A DNA stretch of 63,843 nucleotides, filler included, from Reticulomyxa filosa (Eukaryota > Protista > Foraminifera): assembly GCA_000512085.1 (NCBI GenBank). It is 23 parts of 23 records of this genome, joined end to end, with 100 filler letters (N's around TTAATTAATTAA, not from the genome) between each part and the next. Parts side by side here need not be neighbours in the genome. Positions count along the whole stretch, not along the records: positions 62,229 to 63,843 come from ASPP01045904.1; 22 more parts are not named here. One strand, 5' to 3'. Position numbers and translations under genes: made by a program. The notes beneath the pieces were generated by a model that did not search any database, was not told where the DNA came from, and was given only the letters and a program-made list of their open reading frames with translations. Positions 272-63,843 of the stretch are shown in pieces. Within the stretch, counting starts at the first letter, position 1; every line of letters begins with the position of its first letter.

Positions 272-3200
272 GATTGATATGTTTAAATATATGTTTGACA
301 GAGTTTCAATATTGATTCTGCAAATGAAAGTTAAAATTCTGACTACGACAACCCGACTAATTCCAAGTTTTCTAGTTTTGTTGTTTGGCCATTTTCTGCA
401 ATTTCATTAATACAAAAATAACTTTGTGTTTTTGAGCCAAAGATTACAATTACAGAAAAACATTTTTATCTTACTTTCTTTTGTAATACAAATTTTTTGT
501 AGTCTTTAGAATAACTTGATTTAATATCTACAATTTGAGGGGAAAACTTTTTTAAACTTTTTTCTGGCCTACTTAAGAAAATGAAGCGAAAGTAACAATA
601 ACTCTATAGACAATTTTTAGATCTAAAAAAGGATTTCAATATTTTAAGTGAAACTTTATTTGTGAATATGTGCTCTAGAGGTCCAATATTTGGTAAGAAT
701 ATATTTTGCAAATGTACTGTTTTGTAGAATAAACTTATAATGTAGTTTTATATTTTTTATAGGACAAGGACATGATATCACAATTTTCGTGCCCCCCAAT
801 ACTTCTAACACGTGTAAATGGAGGAATTTCCATAGTTCAAATAATGCAAAGCTGGCAGGTGCAATTCAATTCGCTATAAAAGAGATTGAAGTTTATTTAG
901 TCCAGTGAAGAAAAAAACCTTCATTTTTTTAATGTGATTTATGTGGTACTCTTAAGAAAAATTTGGTGAGTATGAATCAAAAAAGTAAAGGGATTAAATG
1001 AACATAATTTGTATTTTTTGTAAAAGAAATTTGGATTAAAACTTCCCAAATGTTTTTGTCTTCTCGTTTATGAGGACTTATTGTAATTGTACAATCTTTG
1101 CACAATTTTATCCAAGCCCAATCGTTTACTTTGACAGCTCACGAGGAATAGAACATTAGATCGCTGTTTTCACTTAACAAGCTACCGTCCGTCTTGTATA
1201 ATTTTTTCCTCTTTTTTTTGTTTTTCGGCTGATACAAGCGATAGATAACTTCGAACCAAATTTTTATATAAAAGTTTTAGCTTTTTTTTTCTCAAAAAAA
1301 AAACCTGAGATTATTTTCTAATTTTGATTTTGCTTAGAGCTATAGTTTATTGATCATTTTCTCAAAAGTATGTGTCTCTTTGTGACCCAAAGGTCGCACC
1401 ACTTTGGGTTGAAAAAGAAATATTCTGTTATTCTCGTTTGTTTGTGTGGTTACCAAACGAGGAATGAATAAATTGCTTGAAGAACTCATCCAAATATGAG
1501 AAAGAGTTCATCGAATGTGAAGAACAAATTCAACACTTGATGGCAGGCAATGTATGTAGCACTTTCTCCCATATTCAACAGGATGTATTTGCCACCTTTT
1601 TTTTTTATATTGCAATATCTACGGGCAATGACACTTCCACACTGTTTTTTTTTGCAAAAGTGCAACACTTATTATGTCCCATCAAAAAAAAAAAAAGAGA
1701 GTATTCTTCTCGAGTTTGCTTGCACAGATTCAAGCTAACTTCAAATCTTTTCACTTTTGACACTTTCGTATCAATCCCTCGTTGGAACTCACGACGATTT
1801 TCAGTTGGAAATATGAAAATATTTATTTTTTTTAAAAAAGAGATTAATAAAGTTCAAAAGCCTCCATCTTCCAAAGCACGCGAAAAATAAAAGATAAGTT
1901 TTAACAGGTTTGTTTCTAGACAACGCGAAACTTTTCCAAAAAAATTTTAAGGTAACGCAAAGTTTAACATTTTGGGTTAACATTTTTATCAGCTTTCAAA
2001 ATATACTTTTTGTTTACGTACAACCAAGGGAAAATTATAACGAAGCGTTTTTCTAAATTTTTAACAAAAATAGTTCATTTCGATTGCTCTTTTTTTATAT
2101 TTCAGAATTGATACATAAAATATTACATAGTCTGACAAGGAAATATTGATTATGAAAATAACATTTTTCTTTGTTTTTGTACAAGTATTAGGAAAAAAAT
2201 GTACAAACATGATGAACATATTTTCGTTTTCTTCATGACACAAAATTAGAGTCAATTCGAAAAGCTATCATCATTATTATCAATCATTTCGGAAAATAAC
2301 ACAAAAAGTTTTTCATTTTTCTGTAGTGAGAGTTCATGTTCTAAGATGTTGAACTCGGAAGAATTGATGAACGCCTAGTGGGTTAAACTCTTCTAACAAT
2401 TTTTTTCATTCGTTGTGTTATTTTTTCTTTATTTAATTTACTTGTGCTTTGCTGAAGATTTGGTTTTTTGATTAAAACCTTTTTCGTATTACATTTAGGG
2501 CAACTCTTTCAGCTAATGTTCCACAATTCCATGAACTACAATGAGACTACTTTATGGGAATTTTGAAGAAAAAAAGTATTTGTGAATTGGTTCTATTCTT
2601 TCAACAACCAAGACTTGATTAGTTATTGTTTAGTATTGTCTTGCAAACAAAGTTTGAATGTAATTAGAAAGCATAGACAAAAATTAATAATACTCAAAAT
2701 TAAAGCAAATCGAAACCTACAGAAGTGATTTGATTTGGATTATTTACTGTTATGTCTACTATTGTTTGAATTTTTATTCAACATTTGTCATATTAAATCG
2801 AATTACTTAAATGCATTTGTAGTAAACCAAGAAAATATTGTTACAATTTTAATCAAAGATGGTAGGGTATATATGTTCATTTTTCATGCAAAAATACTGA
2901 TATCCATTCTTAGCTGCTACAAGTTCAAATAATGTTAAAGTTCATATTCTTTGAGATTTTGTTTGTAAACAAAATGAATGACATACTTGCTTTTCTTCAC
3001 CATGCGATACTGAAAGATTAAATTTTTTTGCGTTATTCGGTTTATTCTATCAAAAGTATCAGATGTATTTTTGAAATTTTAAAAAATACTAATTTTGTTT
3101 GGATTAAATAATTAAACGTTTTTTTCATTGTTGTACAAATTGTTGTGTTATAAATACGTTAGATTATTTGTCATTGTATCAGTATTATGCAATTATTTAG

Positions 3201-3422
3201 TGATAAATCGAAAGAATTATGTTAAGTCACATTTTTTTGATTAGTACTTTTTATAGAATCGTGCAAGCTCTCAAGTTTTGTTATTTGATTTGGAGGAGAA
3301 AGAAAGCGTTTTTTCTATTTCTGATCGCTAATATCAAGGATATTTTTTTGACAAATATAATACTCTGTCATTTCAAAATGTACATTCAATTATGCGAAAA
3401 CTTCCATTTTTAACTTTTGCAT

Positions 3423-3522
3423 NNNNNNNNNNNNNNNNNNNNNNNNNNNNNNNNNNNNNNNNNNNNTTAATTAATTAANNNNNNNNNNNNNNNNNNNNNN
3501 NNNNNNNNNNNNNNNNNNNNNN
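3423..3522. other. Artificial contig-joining spacer (44 N + TTAATTAATTAA + 44 N); first of 22, others start at 5951, 7710, 8826, 10046, 12826, 17367, 19414, 21260, 23882, 26006, 30846, 32523, 37482, 41955, 43432, 44532, 46499, 55476, 56602, 60514, 62129
   Basis: Identical 100-nt unit repeated; TTAATTAATTAA gives stops in all six frames; genes are truncated at spacer edges. Confidence 0.98.
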
Positions 3523-3572
3523 AGTCAGCAAAGATTAACACGTTTTTTTTTTTTTTTTTTTTTACAAAATAG

Positions 3573-4067
3573 GGGTTTGATAGTGAAGAGGAATCAGAGG
3601 CCGAAAAAGAAAAAGCCAATGAAGTCATTACGCAACAAATGAAGGTAGAAAACGCACACAATATGACAGAAATGGCTCAGACAACTGTGGACAAAGAGAA
3701 AGAGACAGAGAAAGAAAGGGAAAAGAGCAAGACGATAGACAGAGAGATTGTGACACAAGTAAAAACAGAAAATGTCAAAGAAGTAGTCCAAGATACTGAA
3801 ACCAAATCTCTTATATTCAATGGTAGGGACTTACACCGCCCGTTGGATAGTGCGGATGAGGACAGCGAAGAACCCGAGACAAATTTTCACGATAAGATTG
3901 TTTGTCAATATACTCAGGTTCAAAGAAATAAAAATGAATGGCTTGTGGAATTGAAAAATGGAATTATGCATATCAACGGCAAAGATTATGCATTTGCACA
4001 AGCTTCCAACGGAAATTTGAGATGGAGTGTGGATGGCGATGAAAATATTGAAGCAAATGAACATTAG
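3573..4067 (+). CDS. GTF2A1: Transcription factor IIA large subunit (alpha/beta), last exon
   Basis: Acidic region then DKIVCQYTQVQRNKNEWLVELKNGIMHINGKDYAFAQASNGNLRW, matching the TFIIA C-terminal CQYDKIHRSKNKWKFHLKDGIMNLNGRDY..W; AG acceptor at 3571-3572. Confidence 0.9.
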   Translation, partial: GFDSEEESEAEKEKANEVITQQMKVENAHNMTEMAQTTVDKEKETEKEREKSKTIDREIVTQVKTENVKEVVQDTETKSLIFNGRDLHRPLDSADEDSEEPETNFHDKIVCQYTQVQRNKNEWLVELKNGIMHINGKDYAFAQASNGNLRWSVDGDENIEANEH

Positions 4068-4683
4068 CCTTTCTTTTTTTTTGTTCCAGTTGCCACCGCT
4101 GTGTGCTGCATTGATATCGCATGTCCTCTTTGTCTTTTCCTTCGCTGTTCGCTTGGAAAGGAGATTCGATTTGAAAGAGCAAAACCATTTTTATGTGCAA
4201 TTTTATTTTGCTTATTTTTTGAGCGATTCAAAGTGCTGTGTAAAATGTAGCCACGGGAGGAACATACTCTTCGCTCTAGCATTTTCATTCTTTTTTTTTT
4301 TTTCAAGACTCGAGGAAAAAAAAAAACGATTAGCAAATGCTTTTCCGCTTAAATGTGCCCACAGTCAAGACAATTGTTCACAGCAAAACAACAAGAAAAG
4401 GCTGTACTGTTACAACTTTTGTTCGATCCAAGAAAAAGAACGTCTATATTTGATTTTCAACATGCCAAAAAAAAAGAATTAAGTTCGAAACGACAAAACA
4501 ATGCAAAACAGAAAACGCCAAATGGCGCTCTCTCTCTCCCTCAAAAAAAAAAAGTAGAATTAAATCATATGAGAAAGGCTTCCACGTGATTCATTTATTA
4601 ATTATTTTCAACAAAAGCAAAAAAAAACCAAAAAAAAAAAAGGAAAAGCAGAAATTTGTAAATACGTAAGAAAAGGGTGATAT

Positions 4684-5807
4684 TTAATTCCAGCCCCAGT
4701 CATCGTCATCGGCAAGAGTGACTGTTTTGCCATTTTGGGTGTTTGCACTGTTTTTTTGTTTGTTGTCTTTTTCGCTTTGTTGATTGGAAGCATTGGCAGT
4801 TGGGACTTCGTCATCACTGAATCCATCCAAATCCACAGTTGCCAAATCTTTCTTGGACACGTTGGCAGTTGGACGTGAAATTCCCGAGTTTTGGGAAGAT
4901 TTCAGGTTCAGATTTTTCACTCCTTCAGAAATGTCATTTTTTTTACGTTGTGAAGATTGGGACTGAGGTTGAGACTTTGCCAATGGTTTGATATTTTTTG
5001 GACGATTTTGCAATATGGCATCAATATCATCATCGTCTTGTTCTTGCTCTTGTTCTTGTTCTTGTTCCAATTCCGTTCCTGGTTCTGGTTCTGGTTTTGT
5101 TTCTTCTTCTTCTTCTTCTCTTTGTTGTTCTTCTTCTTGAAAACCCCAATCATTATCATCGCCGTTAAGATCATTATCATTGTCATTTTTTTTTATAGAA
5201 TTGACAACGGTTGGTTTTGTCTGATCGATAGTCCTTTTGACATTGGACCCATAGCCTCCACTACTCTTCTGACTGTTTAACCCATTGCCAGTTTTGGCTG
5301 CACTTGATGCATTTGGCATATTATTTCTTTCAAAGAATGTTTCCGAGGACAGGGCCTGTCCGCTGTATTTACCAGATTGTTGTTTTATGGAGTTGTCTGG
5401 GTTGTACAATTGAATATCGCCATTGTCTTCGTTTTCATCTACCAATGTACGGATCTAATCCCCACCACCACCATCAATATTCCGATGTTTGTTTATTTAG
5501 CCAAATATTGCATACACAAACATATGACACATAAATCATATATATATACGTGTATACACATATATATATATATATGTATATGTATATATATGCATATATA
5601 TATATACATATAACAAAGCTGATTTTTGTGCTGAAGTCCACCACGACGAAACATTTGAAGAAACGGCAGTCCAGCTATGAGATGCGGATTGACTAAGTTT
5701 GTTGCTAAGTTCGGGATCTTGCAGTTGTTCCTTGACTTTGGAGGACGCGACGGACGCCTTTTCTCCCAGCTGGGACGCAACTACTTTGGTTTTGCTCGCC
5801 AAGCCTG
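4684..5807 (-). CDS. Probable ArfGAP1/Gcs1-like protein, C-terminal exons (about 5807-5608 and 5454-4684)
   Basis: Ser/Thr/Trp-rich amphipathic segment SQSASHSWTAVSSNVSSWWTSA (ALPS-like), long disordered tail ending DDDDWGWN; intron contains a TA microsatellite; GAP domain not in contig. Confidence 0.5.
5536..5610. repeat. (TA)n/(TATG) microsatellite in intron
   Basis: Direct sequence. Confidence 0.85.
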
Positions 5808-5912
5808 ACAAATGAAGAAAGATGAGGAAGGGAAAGAAACAAAACAAGCAACAATGATTTTTATACTATTATATACAATATATAATTTTTTTTTTTTTTT
5901 TTTTTTGGAACC

Positions 5913-5950
<38 letters not shown>

Positions 5951-6881
5951 NNNNNNNNNNNNNNNNNNNNNNNNNNNNNNNNNNNNNNNNNNNNTTAATT
6001 AATTAANNNNNNNNNNNNNNNNNNNNNNNNNNNNNNNNNNNNNNNNNNNNGAACAAGGACATTATAGAATTATCTCACTATCAAGAAGTTCAATTCCTCC
6101 TTCTCCCTCAAAAGAAAGCTTGAAACTTGTACAATCTACCAAGACTTTTTCACGACAGTATAAGGGTAACAAAGACAATACTATAACGGAAGGAAATGAA
6201 GCTCTCTTAGTCCAGATATAATTTTTTGAGAAAGTCAAATCACAGGTTTACTAAACGAACAAAAAGTTTTAAAATATTAGATATTAAAAAATAGTAAAAT
6301 ATAAGGAGATCATATTTTCTCGTGTGCCTTCTTTCAGATAACAAGCATATACTTTACAATTCGCAAAAATACAGTTGAAAATTTTGTAACTTACAAAAAT
6401 TTTCGTTTTGTATGAATCGACTAAAAATCACAACTGATTTGATAAAAAATTATTCTTTTAATACAAAAAAATGCAATAAAATTTGATACCTTAAATTGGA
6501 TTTGGGTCAAAGTAAAAAAAATTTTTAAGCACAATAAACATGAAGAATAAAGCAAATTTGTTATTTTTTAATTAATTTTTTAAATAATTAAAAGATTATC
6601 AAAGATAATTCATCATAGTCTATGCATAAAGATTTTCTTGGCCAGTTACATGCCCTTAAACTTTAATGCGCCATATTGGCACCATTTTTCGCCTGTGAAC
6701 TACATAAATCAACTTATTGATTTTTTTTCAAGTGAAACACAAAACAGCTCGTGTTTAGTGAGTCAGTTGAATTTTTATTTCGACCCATTTTGGTTCATTC
6801 AAGATCCCAAAAGCGAGACTTGGTTGATAATCTTTGAATTCACAGCCATCATTTAACATAGTAAACAAAAAATCCGTTTCC

Positions 6882-7601
6882 ATGGGGTGCTTTCATTCAA
6901 CGACAGATTCTCCTAGAATTTTGATGTTAGGACTCGACGGCGCAGGCAAAACTACAATATTGTACAGACTAAAATTGGGAGAAGTCCAGCCAACCACACA
7001 ACTATTGGTTTAAAAAAAAACAGTCAAACAGATGATACAGCATGTGTTTTTTTATTTCCTATGTTATTAAAAATGTACGATTTTGTTTGTTATTCTTCAA
7101 AAAAACAAAAAATAAAAAAATATTGGAAAAAAAGAAAACTACAACACCAATTAAATAACATAGGATTTAACTTGGAACAAGTCACTTATAATGGGTTAGA
7201 ATTTGGTGTTTGGGATGTCGGTGGACAGTTAAGTATCACTACAGTGACAACACTACAAGACCAAAAAAAAGATAAAATGTACAGCAAAAAGAGAAAATTT
7301 TTTTTTTTATTGAGATGATTGTTTTTTTATTAAAAAAAAAAAAATAGAGACAAAATTCGACCACTTTGGAGACATTATTATCCAGTTATGTCTACAAAGA
7401 CATTTTTTTTTTTATCGTCTTAAAATACGTATAATTTTTTAATGTTGTGGGGACCAAAAAAAAATAGGGCACAGAGGGATAATCTTCGTTGTCGATAGCA
7501 ATGACTCACAAAGATTTTATGAAGCAAAAGAGGAACTTCAAGGGCTCATGAACGAAGCAGAGCTTATCGATGCTACACTATTGGTGTATGCAAATAAACA
7601 G
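6882..7601 (+). CDS. ARF: ADP-ribosylation factor (Arf) family small GTPase, 3' partial; exons 6882-7007, 7164-7227, 7348-7384, 7468-7601
   Basis: [52 protein letters not shown]/..[18 protein letters not shown] with GT-AG introns; one-base shortfall in the G run at 7476-7478. Confidence 0.93.
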
Positions 7602-7809
7602 GTGATTTTTTAAAAAAGAAAAAAAAACACCTCTACCTACTCACACCCCTCTCTCCTCTTTTTGGATTCAATGAGACACCAGCTTAAGTGTTGGTGTTTG
7701 TTCATCGACNNNNNNNNNNNNNNNNNNNNNNNNNNNNNNNNNNNNNNNNNNNNTTAATTAATTAANNNNNNNNNNNNNNNNNNNNNNNNNNNNNNNNNNN
7801 NNNNNNNNN

Positions 7810-8005
7810 ACTGTGACTGTGACTGTGACTGTGGTTGTAAATGCAATGCAAGAGATTGCATTCGCATTGAATCCATTACTATGTTGGTCCCCACTTTTTC
7901 ATTGCTCGTTGACAACATATTCGCTGCTGTTGAGATTACAATGCCATTATCATCATTACTTGTTTCATTGCTTACTTCTTCTTTTTCTTTTATCTTTTCA
8001 TCCAT
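7810..8005 (-). CDS. Hypothetical protein, N-terminal part with QS repeat
   Basis: ATG-initiated ORF running into contig end; (CAGTCA)n repeat. Confidence 0.45.
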
Positions 8006-9190
8006 GATCAGTTTATTATAACACGTTGTTGTTTTTTTTTTTCAAAAGTATTTATTTATTTATTTATGTTGAAGTTTATTCCGAATTTGCGCCGATCACG
8101 TTTCCGGTCCAAAATTTTTACCAAAGTAATCCCAAATTTTGTTCGCGCCGAAAAACAAGATATTTCAAAAGCAAAGAACAAAATCACACCAACAAACAAA
8201 AGACAGAGTTGGCAAGAATATTTGTCCTTATCTCTGGATGCTCACCAATACTTAAATACCAGATTTCACCTTTTTTCAAAAAAGGATTTGATTTTCTAAC
8301 GGAAAAATGACGCCCAACGCCAAAACAAAAAAAATTGAGCTATTATGGATTTGCGTTAAGTTCTTGAATTTTTTTTTCCCCCCTTTTTCCGTCTTGCACT
8401 CCTTTGTTTTTCCACAACAAACAAGTAAAAAAAAGTATTATTATAACTAAAATAAGAACAAGAAAAATAAAAGTTCAATTTTCTTGATTTTAAGCGTAGT
8501 TTTCACGCTTAAAAGTTGGTATAAAAACACAGATTTCTAAAACGAGGACGGTAATTAAAAATACTATACCTTCAGTGAAATACGGTCTATGGCAAAGAGA
8601 TACTGAACAGAAACTCACTTTTAATTTTGCAGATGTCTCTTTTTTTGCAATGAACAAAAAAGAAAAGAAATGCGATGTTTGCTACTGCTGGTGACAACGA
8701 GCTCAGTTAAGATTTTTTTGCATGGACTGTATTTCAAGCAATAACTAGCCAGGTCTGGAGGAAATACTGGATTCAACACCACAAATTCTTTTGTCATTAG
8801 TCCAAAACAACACTCGGATGTCCAANNNNNNNNNNNNNNNNNNNNNNNNNNNNNNNNNNNNNNNNNNNNTTAATTAATTAANNNNNNNNNNNNNNNNNNN
8901 NNNNNNNNNNNNNNNNNNNNNNNNNATCAAATCGAATCACGGAACATTTAAACAAAACAAAATAAAAAAACGATCGAAATGTTGCACTGTGCATTTTCTT
9001 TATGCCTCCGCAATTGCGCAATTTTTTTGATAACACTTGCCAAATGTGTCTCAGCGCCATAATGACCTCGAAAAACGAGCAACAAGTAAGTAGTAGTTTT
9101 TGTTTTGTTAAATATGTGAATGTAATGTAGTATATATATATATATATATATACCCTGAAAGCAAAAACAAAAACAAAAAAAATGGAATAG

Positions 9191-62128: not shown

Positions 62129-62230
62129 NNNNNNNNNNNNNNNNNNNNNNNNNNNNNNNNNNNNNNNNNNNNTTAATTAATTAANNNNNNNNNNNNNNNN
62201 NNNNNNNNNNNNNNNNNNNNNNNNNNNNAA

Positions 62231-63136
62231 GACAACTTGCAACAACCCACGCCGAAATACCTTTTTGATATCACTGAAAATGATATTTTATGTTTCGATG
62301 AAAATCATTTAAATGATATCATTCAAAGACGAAGTATTCCAGTATTACAATATGGTCAAAGTGACAAATCCAAATGCTTCGACTTGGAATCTATTGAAAA
62401 TGATATTCGTCACACCTTTGTTCATGGTCGACGACCACTTACATTTATTATTCCTTTGTTTGAATATCGTAGTGGCTTTGATATTCACAGTTGCATTACA
62501 ACTATTGAAACACGTCATAAAAAATGCAAAAATGCACAATTCCAGTCATTTTGGGACAAATTGAACTTGTCAGCTGCTTCACCTCTGGAAAAACAAAAAG
62601 CACTGGGAATGTTAAATGATGTAATTGTTTATTTCTATCAAAATCTTAATAATCTTCAAGTGAATATGCGATTAACTGAATTACTTGAAAAATTGCACTT
62701 TGAGAAAAAAGATTGGGGTTTATTTTCCCAACGAGGCTATTCCAATGATGGAAGGGATCAACTCTGTGTCAAACATGTTGGAGTGTTATGGCGCCAATTG
62801 CATAATATAGTTCAATCTGAACGTTTGGATGAAAGTTCAATTGCTCCATTTGTTCTTGAGATTTATCGACAACCTTTAACTGGTGAAGCACAAACACAAA
62901 TCAAAGAATTTGTTAAAAAAACTTCGATGGGTACTATGAAGGGGATATTAAAGGCTTGGCGTGAAATTGCTTATAAACAAGGGCATATAAAACGAAACGC
63001 AAAAGCTGAAGATTTTACTCATATGCTGAAACATTGTGATTTAAAATATTTTCCACATCAATTTTTGAAATGGGAACATTGCGCTGCTGCCTATGAATGT
63101 GCATACCAATATGCATGTCAAGAATGGAAGATATAA
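62231..63136 (+). CDS. RNF213: RNF213 (mysterin)-like protein, C-terminal domain, 5' partial
   Basis: FDLESIENDIRHTFVHGRRPLTFIIPLFEYR vs human FDLEKIQRQIVSRFLQGKPRLSLKGIPTLVYR; CVKHVGVLWRQL vs CQLKHTIALWQFL; PF..YRQPL vs PF..YKADL; FP..HCAAAY vs FP..SCVSVW; collinear to the stop. Confidence 0.75.
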   Translation, partial: DNLQQPTPKYLFDITENDILCFDENHLNDIIQRRSIPVLQYGQSDKSKCFDLESIENDIRHTFVHGRRPLTFIIPLFEYRSGFDIHSCITTIETRHKKCKNAQFQSFWDKLNLSAASPLEKQKALGMLNDVIVYFYQNLNNLQVNMRLTELLEKLHFEKKDWGLFSQRGYSNDGRDQLCVKHVGVLWRQLHNIVQSERLDESSIAPFVLEIYRQPLTGEAQTQIKEFVKKTSMGTMKGILKAWREIAYKQGHIKRNAKAEDFTHMLKHCDLKYFPHQFLKWEHCAAAYECAYQYACQEWKI

Positions 63137-63471
63137 GATCAACAATCAAAAAAATTGTCGTAGATTGAAAGCTTTTGGCAAAAATGCTTTTTGAAAATAG
63201 GTCATTTTTTTTTATATGTACAGTATATTGCAAAAAAACTAGCATACCTAAAGGCACCATAAGATAGTCGATTTTCTTCACGAAAGATAAACATTTAACT
63301 CTAATTTTTTTTTATATGATTTTTGAAAATTTCGCAGTAATGCATATAAATCAAACATGTGTTGCTAAGATGTAATTTTTAAATATTCTTCTTTTTTGGG
63401 AATCTTCAGGTCAAGTAGGTAATTAAAAAATAGCACAGCATTAAAATTCACTTTTTTGAAATTTTTTTTTG

Positions 63472-63790
63472 TATGGTTCTTTCGTCTGCAGTACTTGCAT
63501 ACATGCTTCTTGGTGCAATCTTTAGCGAAGTGGTTCAAACCAAAGCACTTCCTGAATGAAATGCAATCGGTCTGCTAATGTATCTGTCAAATAGCCCGCA
63601 CGTTACATGTAGTTACCCAATTCTTACTTCCTTTTCTTGTAGTGCTCTTTTCACATCATTCGATGTGGCAAACAGAACTTTCACAATCGGGAGACCTTTA
63701 AACATCTCCAATTTCTCGACGTTGTATTCCATTTCTTGCATTGCTCCAATAATTTCATAATCGCTTTCATTAGCACATATCTGTTCATTT
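63472..63790 (-). mobile_element. Degenerate non-LTR retrotransposon ORF1 (gag-like, CCHC zinc knuckles)
   Basis: LPIVKVLF..VKRAL..VRIG*..RP.. then RKCFGLNHFAKDCTKKHVCKYCRRKNH; in-frame stop and frameshift. Confidence 0.7.
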
Positions 63791-63843
63791 CAGGGTCTTC
63801 TACTACAGTAGATTGCAAAAAAAACCGCCATACCTAAATGGCA

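Follow-up and report, generated by a model that had tools for sequence, protein, structure and literature searches.

A probable RNF213-like C-terminus from an expanded gene family of the foraminiferan Reticulomyxa filosa

Introduction

Does a foraminiferan encode a relative of the giant ubiquitin ligase RNF213 (mysterin)? The question is raised by an open reading frame (ORF) in genomic DNA of Reticulomyxa filosa, a naked freshwater foraminiferan. The ORF lies near the end of a 63,843-nucleotide stretch of joined contig parts, here called the window, along which all coordinates are counted unless another contig is named. Contig ASPP01045904.1 supplies 62229-63843, which is AT-rich (GC 0.33-0.34). 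Profile and fold comparisons place the extreme C-terminal helical domain (CTD) of RNF213 in this ORF, which very probably represents the C-terminal end, i.e., the tail of the ubiquitin ligase (E3) module plus the CTD, of one copy of an expanded RNF213-like family in R. filosa.

Mysterin has been described as conserved in protochordates and vertebrates (PMC6400562), and its CTD and E3 subdomains have been reported to be without structural counterpart (PMC7311170, PMC12075652). The RZ domain of ZNFX1 alone has been traced back to choanoflagellates (bioRxiv 2025.10.14.682297). RNF213 is not connected to Reticulomyxa, Foraminifera, Rhizaria, amoebae, choanoflagellates, or dinoflagellates in any paper of the literature that we searched. 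Bona fide homologs from Foraminifera and Acantharea would mean that such ligases arose, or have spread, beyond animals.

Results

The window ORF ends in an RNF213-like CTD

The plus-strand frame comprises 301 codons without a stop, a length with a chance expectation of ~4e-11 at the base composition of this piece. It exits the left edge of the contig, beyond which the 5′ part of the gene lies, and hence encodes just the C-terminus of the protein. The following features were delimited:

62231-63133, plus strand: probable coding 3′ end, comprising the final 301 codons for an RNF213-like protein (open frame, paralogs, profile, AlphaFold2 and Foldseek)
62231-62482, plus strand: residues 1-84, small alpha/beta lobe, the last part of the E3 module plus linker, equivalent to mouse ~4860-4929 (profile alignment)
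62483-63133, plus strand: residues 85-301, helical CTD proper, equivalent to mouse 4930-5147 (profile hits, hhalign, published CTD)
63011-63043, plus strand: residues 261-271, DFTHMLKHCDL, counterpart of the stretch that contacts the ubiquitin-conjugating enzyme (E2) (hmmalign of the family)
63134-63136, plus strand: TAA stop codon (open frame)
63137-63843, no strand: AT-rich 3′ flank, GC 0.33, outside the protein (Rfam and tRNA scans without match)

Searches with single sequences did not lead to RNF213. The window protein matched nothing above threshold in Pfam, where only sub-threshold noise (DUF2714, XS) was recorded, and phmmer found no match among PDB sequences for it or for the R. filosa paralogs P0012 and P0010. 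Its closest database proteins are nine R. filosa hypothetical proteins (51-91% identity), which reveals a multi-copy family. A profile of close paralogs (A1), run against 1.84 billion representative proteins, collected just 43 relatives, mostly R. filosa fragments. Those from outside Reticulomyxa belong to Acantharea (Phyllostaurus siculus and Astrolonche serrata), a radiolarian lineage, to marine metatranscriptomes, and to ENA assemblies. Besides R. filosa sequences, homologous-protein searches yielded two from ENA and one from a marine metatranscriptome, and no animal sequence.

The connection to RNF213 was made by the profile of the combined domain alignment (A2, 38 sequences), which matched RNF213 in the PDB at an E value of 2.1e-16 (63.6 bits), the next match being at E 0.04. 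Positions 16-300 of this profile align collinearly with mouse RNF213 4860-5147, the extreme C-terminus, and positions 14-293 with residues 4955-5238 of the human construct (5247 residues). A profile of acantharean and marine sequences only (A5) reached RNF213 in the PDB on its own (E 2.8e-15), and hhalign joined it to a CTD profile made exclusively of R. filosa sequences (A4) with a probability of 100 and an E value of 1.8e-44 over 281 columns. Full-length profiles, either mixed (A3) or of the P0037 subfamily (A6), had no match in the PDB. In the HMMER alignment with mouse RNF213, the motif FDLE.I....F..G+ reads CFDLESIENDIRHTFVHGRR in the window and EFDLEKIQRQISSRFLQGKP in mouse, KH...LW..L reads VKHVGVLWRQL and LRHIIALWQFL, and FP....C reads YFPHQFLKWEHC and QFPEEILMSSC, respectively.

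AlphaFold2 modeling with the A2 alignment returned a small alpha/beta lobe, with strands at residues 7-10, 35-37, 48-50, and 70-73, followed by a helical lobe (mean predicted local distance difference test [pLDDT] of 87.1; predicted template modeling score [pTM] of 0.53). The top eight Foldseek matches of this model in the PDB were all RNF213 chains (E 1.3e-5 to 3.6e-3; probability 0.97-1.00), and the next one had an E value of 1.3. VIA alignments of the CTD model to other PDB chains remained below Z 4.5. In the ESM Atlas, the top shape match was a chordate cluster named 'RN213 ligase (Fragment)' (TM 0.31). Bacterial DUF6138, which came up in an ESM Atlas feature search with the CTD (0.90, low recognition value), was dismissed as noise.

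A first-pass annotation of this DNA had compared the three motifs with human RNF213 and had named in advance a profile or fold match to the RNF213 CTD as the check to be made. The motifs proved genuine, the profile match is significant, and Foldseek is significant for RNF213 alone. The same annotation had taken the whole 300-residue C-terminus as the CTD. The collinear motifs agree with that proposal, and its extent has to be narrowed: since the published boundary of the mouse CTD (4930-5148; PMC12075652) starts at 4930, the CTD proper is restricted to window residues 85-301, residues 1-84 being E3 tail and linker.

Paralogs carry an RZ finger and, at one locus, an AAA core upstream of the CTD

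Pfam identified an RZ-type zinc finger (PF20173) in the R. filosa paralogs P0012, P0037, P0016, and P0014 and likewise in P0057, P0058, and P0060. The finger is located ~670-870 residues before the C-terminus, with spacing as in RNF213. The P0037 and P0012 groups preserve the complete RZ pattern (C-x3-H-x6-C-x7/8-C), and the P0014 and P0016 groups also have the nucleophile Cys. RZ-like fingers of the P0020 group, P0029, and P0063 combine CxxGH with a distal Cys pair and lack the nucleophile cysteine. In the subclade of the window copy, RZ-like fingers without the nucleophile are found at:

P0010, residues 712-745
P0011, residues 456-494
P0018, residues 29-69

Contig ASPP01001449.1 (L002), whose paralog belongs to a subclade other than that of the window copy, extends the picture upstream. 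An ORF at 392-4906 precedes the P0012 gene model (5020-8943) on the same strand and aligns by plain phmmer with mouse RNF213 2352-3196 (E 9.6e-89, 302 bits; next PDB match, E > 0.05). It retains Walker A and B at both AAA3 (GETGCGKT and DE) and AAA4 (GNPGTSKT and LDE), and Pfam assigns AAA, AAA_7, AAA_5, and AAA_8 families to it. P0010, the longest member of the window subclade, matches the end of this ORF over ~220 residues (E 6e-16) and P0012 from the first residue of the latter (E 4e-74), and it is thus collinear with L002/P0012 over ~1100 residues. Because P0010 spans their junction, the two L002 models are parts of one gene. This gene has at least ~2850 residues, is ended by the contig edge, and equals the mouse span from AAA3 to the C-terminus (2352-5148). 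The two ORFs were searched separately. The adjacent database models of 1599 and 1208 residues at L002 392-8943 thus belong to a single RNF213-like gene; a change of frame occurs at 4907-4909, and the low-complexity terminus of ORF 392-4906 resembles an intron or a frameshift.

The part of P0037 that extends from the RZ finger through the CTD was modeled by AlphaFold2 (residues 150-1077; pLDDT 73). Foldseek matched this model to nine RNF213 chains (E 4.8e-13 to 2.6e-6, 693-965 columns; next match, E 0.22), and its VIA alignment to the human E3-module map 9JWG covered 402 residues (human 4433-4979) with Z 17.8, compared with 5.4 for the runner-up.

These data bear on two further points of the first-pass annotation, which had proposed mysterin-like giants and called for a genome-wide count of paralogs. 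An AAA3/AAA4 core directly upstream of the RZ finger and CTD at L002 sustains the former, with the exception of the RING finger, and the count came to at least 21 CTD-bearing R. filosa sequences.

Family structure and state of the window copy

The CTD tree, which contains R. filosa, acantharean, and ENA sequences and no animal RNF213, separates the distinct R. filosa sequences that cover the CTD core into two deep clades. One joins the P0037 group and ENA sequences, and in the other, 17 R. filosa members form a clade beside an acantharean group. The window copy falls into a nine-member subclade with a support of 100/100. The ratio of nonsynonymous to synonymous substitution rates (dN/dS) between the window copy and its paralogs is 0.32-0.35 where the pair is older and 0.44-0.63 where it is closest, and these values therefore indicate constraint, relaxed or fast-evolving. 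Two R. filosa proteins, P0035 (residues 374-461) and P0041 (residues 374-464), have only the last ~90 CTD-like residues, which are internal to the protein; UniRef gives one of the two the name 'Viral A-type inclusion protein'.

The window piece and the sister contigs ASPP01018720.1 (L003) and ASPP01022751.1 (L004) have a common starting point, one homologous base, and show 100% identity over the first 356-406 bases (L003 1-406, L004 1-356; window 62229 to ~62634, with both sisters identical to ~62584), after which identity drops abruptly to ~92-94%. Two explanations fit this shared start: the assembly broke at a collapsed repeat, or the paralogs underwent gene conversion. The ~94% nucleotide identity to L003 extends into the 3′ flank, as far as 63469. 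A 1-nucleotide deletion in L003, at the equivalent of window 63011, disrupts the CTD frame and accounts for the shortened 231-residue gene model P0004; it denotes either a pseudogene or a sequencing error. L004 reads past the usual stop. The public models P0002 and P0004 take as their first codon an ATG that is out of frame (MISFKDEVF...; window 62313, position 85 in L003 and L004) and then jump into the true frame, an annotation artefact because the contigs start inside the gene.

In mouse RNF213, the CTD contacts E2 through F5093, W5097, D5101, Y5106, and E5108, and the substitutions W5097A and E5108R abolish activity (PMC12075652). This stretch reads FNPNWSLKDTLVSYME in the profile alignment with mouse. 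P0012-type paralogs have a similar F-x2-W-L-D ... F-F-E-N-E stretch. The window counterpart, DFTHMLKHC-DL according to hmmalign, has Met for the Trp and Lys for the Asp/Glu of the paralogs, in a loop that aligns poorly; its alignment is unreliable, and the A2-RNF213 alignment puts W and Y in insert states. Four codons are deleted here, seen as a 12-nucleotide in-frame gap with respect to L004.

Other features of the 3′ flank

Downstream of the stop codon, a minus-strand open frame of 69 codons (63368-63574; ...NHFAKDC...CKYCRRKNH...) has a weak, sub-threshold Pfam match to the zinc knuckle zf-CCHC (E 0.0055, 17.2 bits versus a cutoff of 20.8). A second minus-strand ORF (63616-63789) has no match. 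A convergent gene might contribute these frames as exons, or they may be remnants of a retroelement. The flank also contains a direct repeat of ~34 nucleotides, TACAGTA.ATTGCAAAAAAAC..CATACCTAAA, at 63219-63252 and 63804-63838, 585 nucleotides apart, which recurs downstream of the paralog on ASPP01022751.1 (L004 2033-2132). On the minus strand, the repeat contains AG|GTATG; Rfam and tRNA scans gave no match to it.

Discussion

Support for the window ORF as the end of an RNF213-like protein comes from the A2 and A5 profiles and from the Foldseek ranking. A number of observations count against this assignment. The A1 and A4 profiles had no match in the PDB; only profiles with acantharean or marine members reach RNF213, and the sequence link of the window protein is therefore transitive as judged from these profiles, each of its links being strong. 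TM-scores of the model to RNF213 are low (0.25-0.32; root mean square deviation of ~18 Å), which we attribute to differing orientation of the two predicted lobes (pTM of 0.53). The upstream part of the window copy is off the contig, and its architecture is read from R. filosa paralogs. The nearest of these, P0010, P0011, and P0018, keep the zinc ligands of the RZ finger without the nucleophile Cys, and the E2-docking motif of the window copy itself looks degenerate in the family alignment. Neither a Pfam match nor a C3HC4 pattern for a RING finger was detected in any paralog model covering the expected place, i.e., in P0010 (711 residues upstream of RZ), P0058 (590 residues upstream), P0011, and the L002 ORFs; the RING is dispensable for RNF213 activity (PMC12075652). 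Several copies may have been collapsed into one consensus over window residues 1-84, and no RNA run is listed for the piece.

This last point, together with the broken frame of the 94%-identical L003 sister, the read-through of the stop in L004, the dN/dS of 0.44-0.63 against the closest copies, and the degenerate E2-contact motif with its four-codon deletion, would also suit a decaying or truncated paralog, a pseudogene or gene fragment in place of a working gene. We regard this as unlikely: all 301 codons are open, dN/dS falls to 0.32-0.35 against older paralogs, the indels with respect to L004 are in frame, and a sequencing error could account for the frameshift in L003. A different and shorter architecture, in which the window CTD belongs to a gene that encodes no AAA+ giant, has a slim chance. 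The AAA core was seen solely at L002, in another subclade, and P0035 and P0041 do carry a CTD-like stretch of ~90 residues within other proteins. Nevertheless, P0010 belongs to the subclade of the window copy and is collinear with L002/P0012 along its ~1100 residues, ~220 of which match the end of the AAA ORF.

Chance or convergent likeness of a rhizarian lineage-specific helical domain to RNF213 would explain why no Pfam family and no direct PDB sequence match were found and why TM-scores are low. It is hardly credible in view of the E values along the homology chain (1e-15 to 1e-44), of RNF213 as the sole significant fold match, and of the RZ finger and AAA core that paralogs display in the same order and spacing. 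Homology granted, the family could have reached Rhizaria by horizontal transfer from animals and not by descent from an early eukaryote. In favor of transfer, published descriptions of the gene are confined to protochordates and vertebrates in the literature that we searched (PMC6400562), and the Atlas clusters nearest to the AAA part have a patchy distribution (Rotifera, Foraminifera, Mucoromycota, and Mollusca; leads only). The two deep clades within R. filosa with relatives in Acantharea, the E3-module identity of just 13-18% to mammalian RNF213, and a composition as AT-rich as that of the host genome make transfer a rather improbable route. Thus, the reading that we favor is that of a C-terminal end of one copy in an expanded RNF213-like family.

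What such a domain might do is suggested by mouse RNF213, in which the CTD docks UBE2L3~Ub beside the RZ finger, the RZ cysteine accepts ubiquitin, and the E3 module is turned on allosterically once the AAA core binds ATP (PMC12075652). By homology, the window CTD would most likely act as an E2-docking or regulatory lobe, receiving the ubiquitin-charged E2 or exerting control within an AAA+/RZ-type ligase of several thousand residues. For the window copy, we infer from its relatives that it would share their upstream architecture, bind E2, and take part in any defense role of the family. Without an RZ nucleophile and with an altered dock, paralogs of its subclade may be non-catalytic. Animal RNF213 attaches ubiquitin to lipid A/LPS and coats cytosolic pathogens, and a defense role would be plausible in a phagotrophic protist. 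A more specific proposal, which we put forward tentatively and consider doubtful, is that the diversified, RING-less RNF213-like family of retarians (Foraminifera and Acantharea) would serve cell-autonomous defense or surveillance. Members that are catalytically competent as RZ ligases would be those of the P0012 and P0037 types, and other members, among them the subclade of the window copy, would after loss of the RZ nucleophile and of the canonical E2 dock supply non-catalytic ATP-sensing scaffolds, decoys, or co-assembling coat subunits. If the defense reading is true, mysterin-type immunity would be pre-metazoan, with an expansion resembling that of an immune-receptor family. The natural variants at hand (RING-less, with a nucleophile-less RZ, or with an altered E2 dock) could help to dissect the essential parts of this machine.

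Comparison with known systems

Kinship with RNF213 is already implicit in databases through the automated names 'ring finger protein' and 'RZ-type domain-containing protein'; our findings thus extend a known family and do not define a new system. Of other large proteins with shared parts, the AAA+ motors dynein and Rea1/midasin resemble the L002 ORF in its dynein-related P-loop families AAA_5, AAA_7, and AAA_8. However, the full-length ORF matches RNF213 only, and in the C-terminal part of the R. filosa proteins, a ubiquitin ligase module takes the place of a MIDAS domain or microtubule-binding stalk. ZNFX1 shares the RZ-type finger PF20173 with P0012 and the other six paralogs in which Pfam detects it. 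In the human protein, an SF1 helicase and NFX1 fingers precede this finger, which resides in the C-terminal fragment at 1849-1881, whereas the R. filosa fingers follow AAA_5/AAA_7-type modules and leave ~670-870 residues to the C-terminus. Upstream of RZ, the L002 ORF has no Pfam match to helicase families such as the SF1 type of ZNFX1, and ZNFX1 is absent from the results of all searches with the CTD.

RNF213 (mouse and human; PDB 6TAX, 7OIK, 8S24, 9G08, and 9JWG) differs from the R. filosa proteins in several respects. It exists in one or two copies, compared with at least 21 in R. filosa. Its RING finger is not detected at the expected place in the paralogs, its RZ nucleophile Cys is absent from two R. 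filosa subclades, that of the window included, and its residues for E2 contact seem to be replaced in the window copy, as far as the unreliable loop alignment allows. E3 modules have diverged to the low identity given above. The N-terminal stalk and CBM20 domain, with which RNF213 totals ~5000 residues, were not seen in R. filosa, whose contigs end before that region (L002 starts at AAA3). Common to both are the AAA3/AAA4 Walker A and B motifs, found in L002, a similar span of ~2850 residues from AAA3 to the end, and the order of AAA3/AAA4 core, E3 shell and core, RZ finger, and CTD, the last of which has its homologous counterpart at the extreme C-terminus of the window protein.
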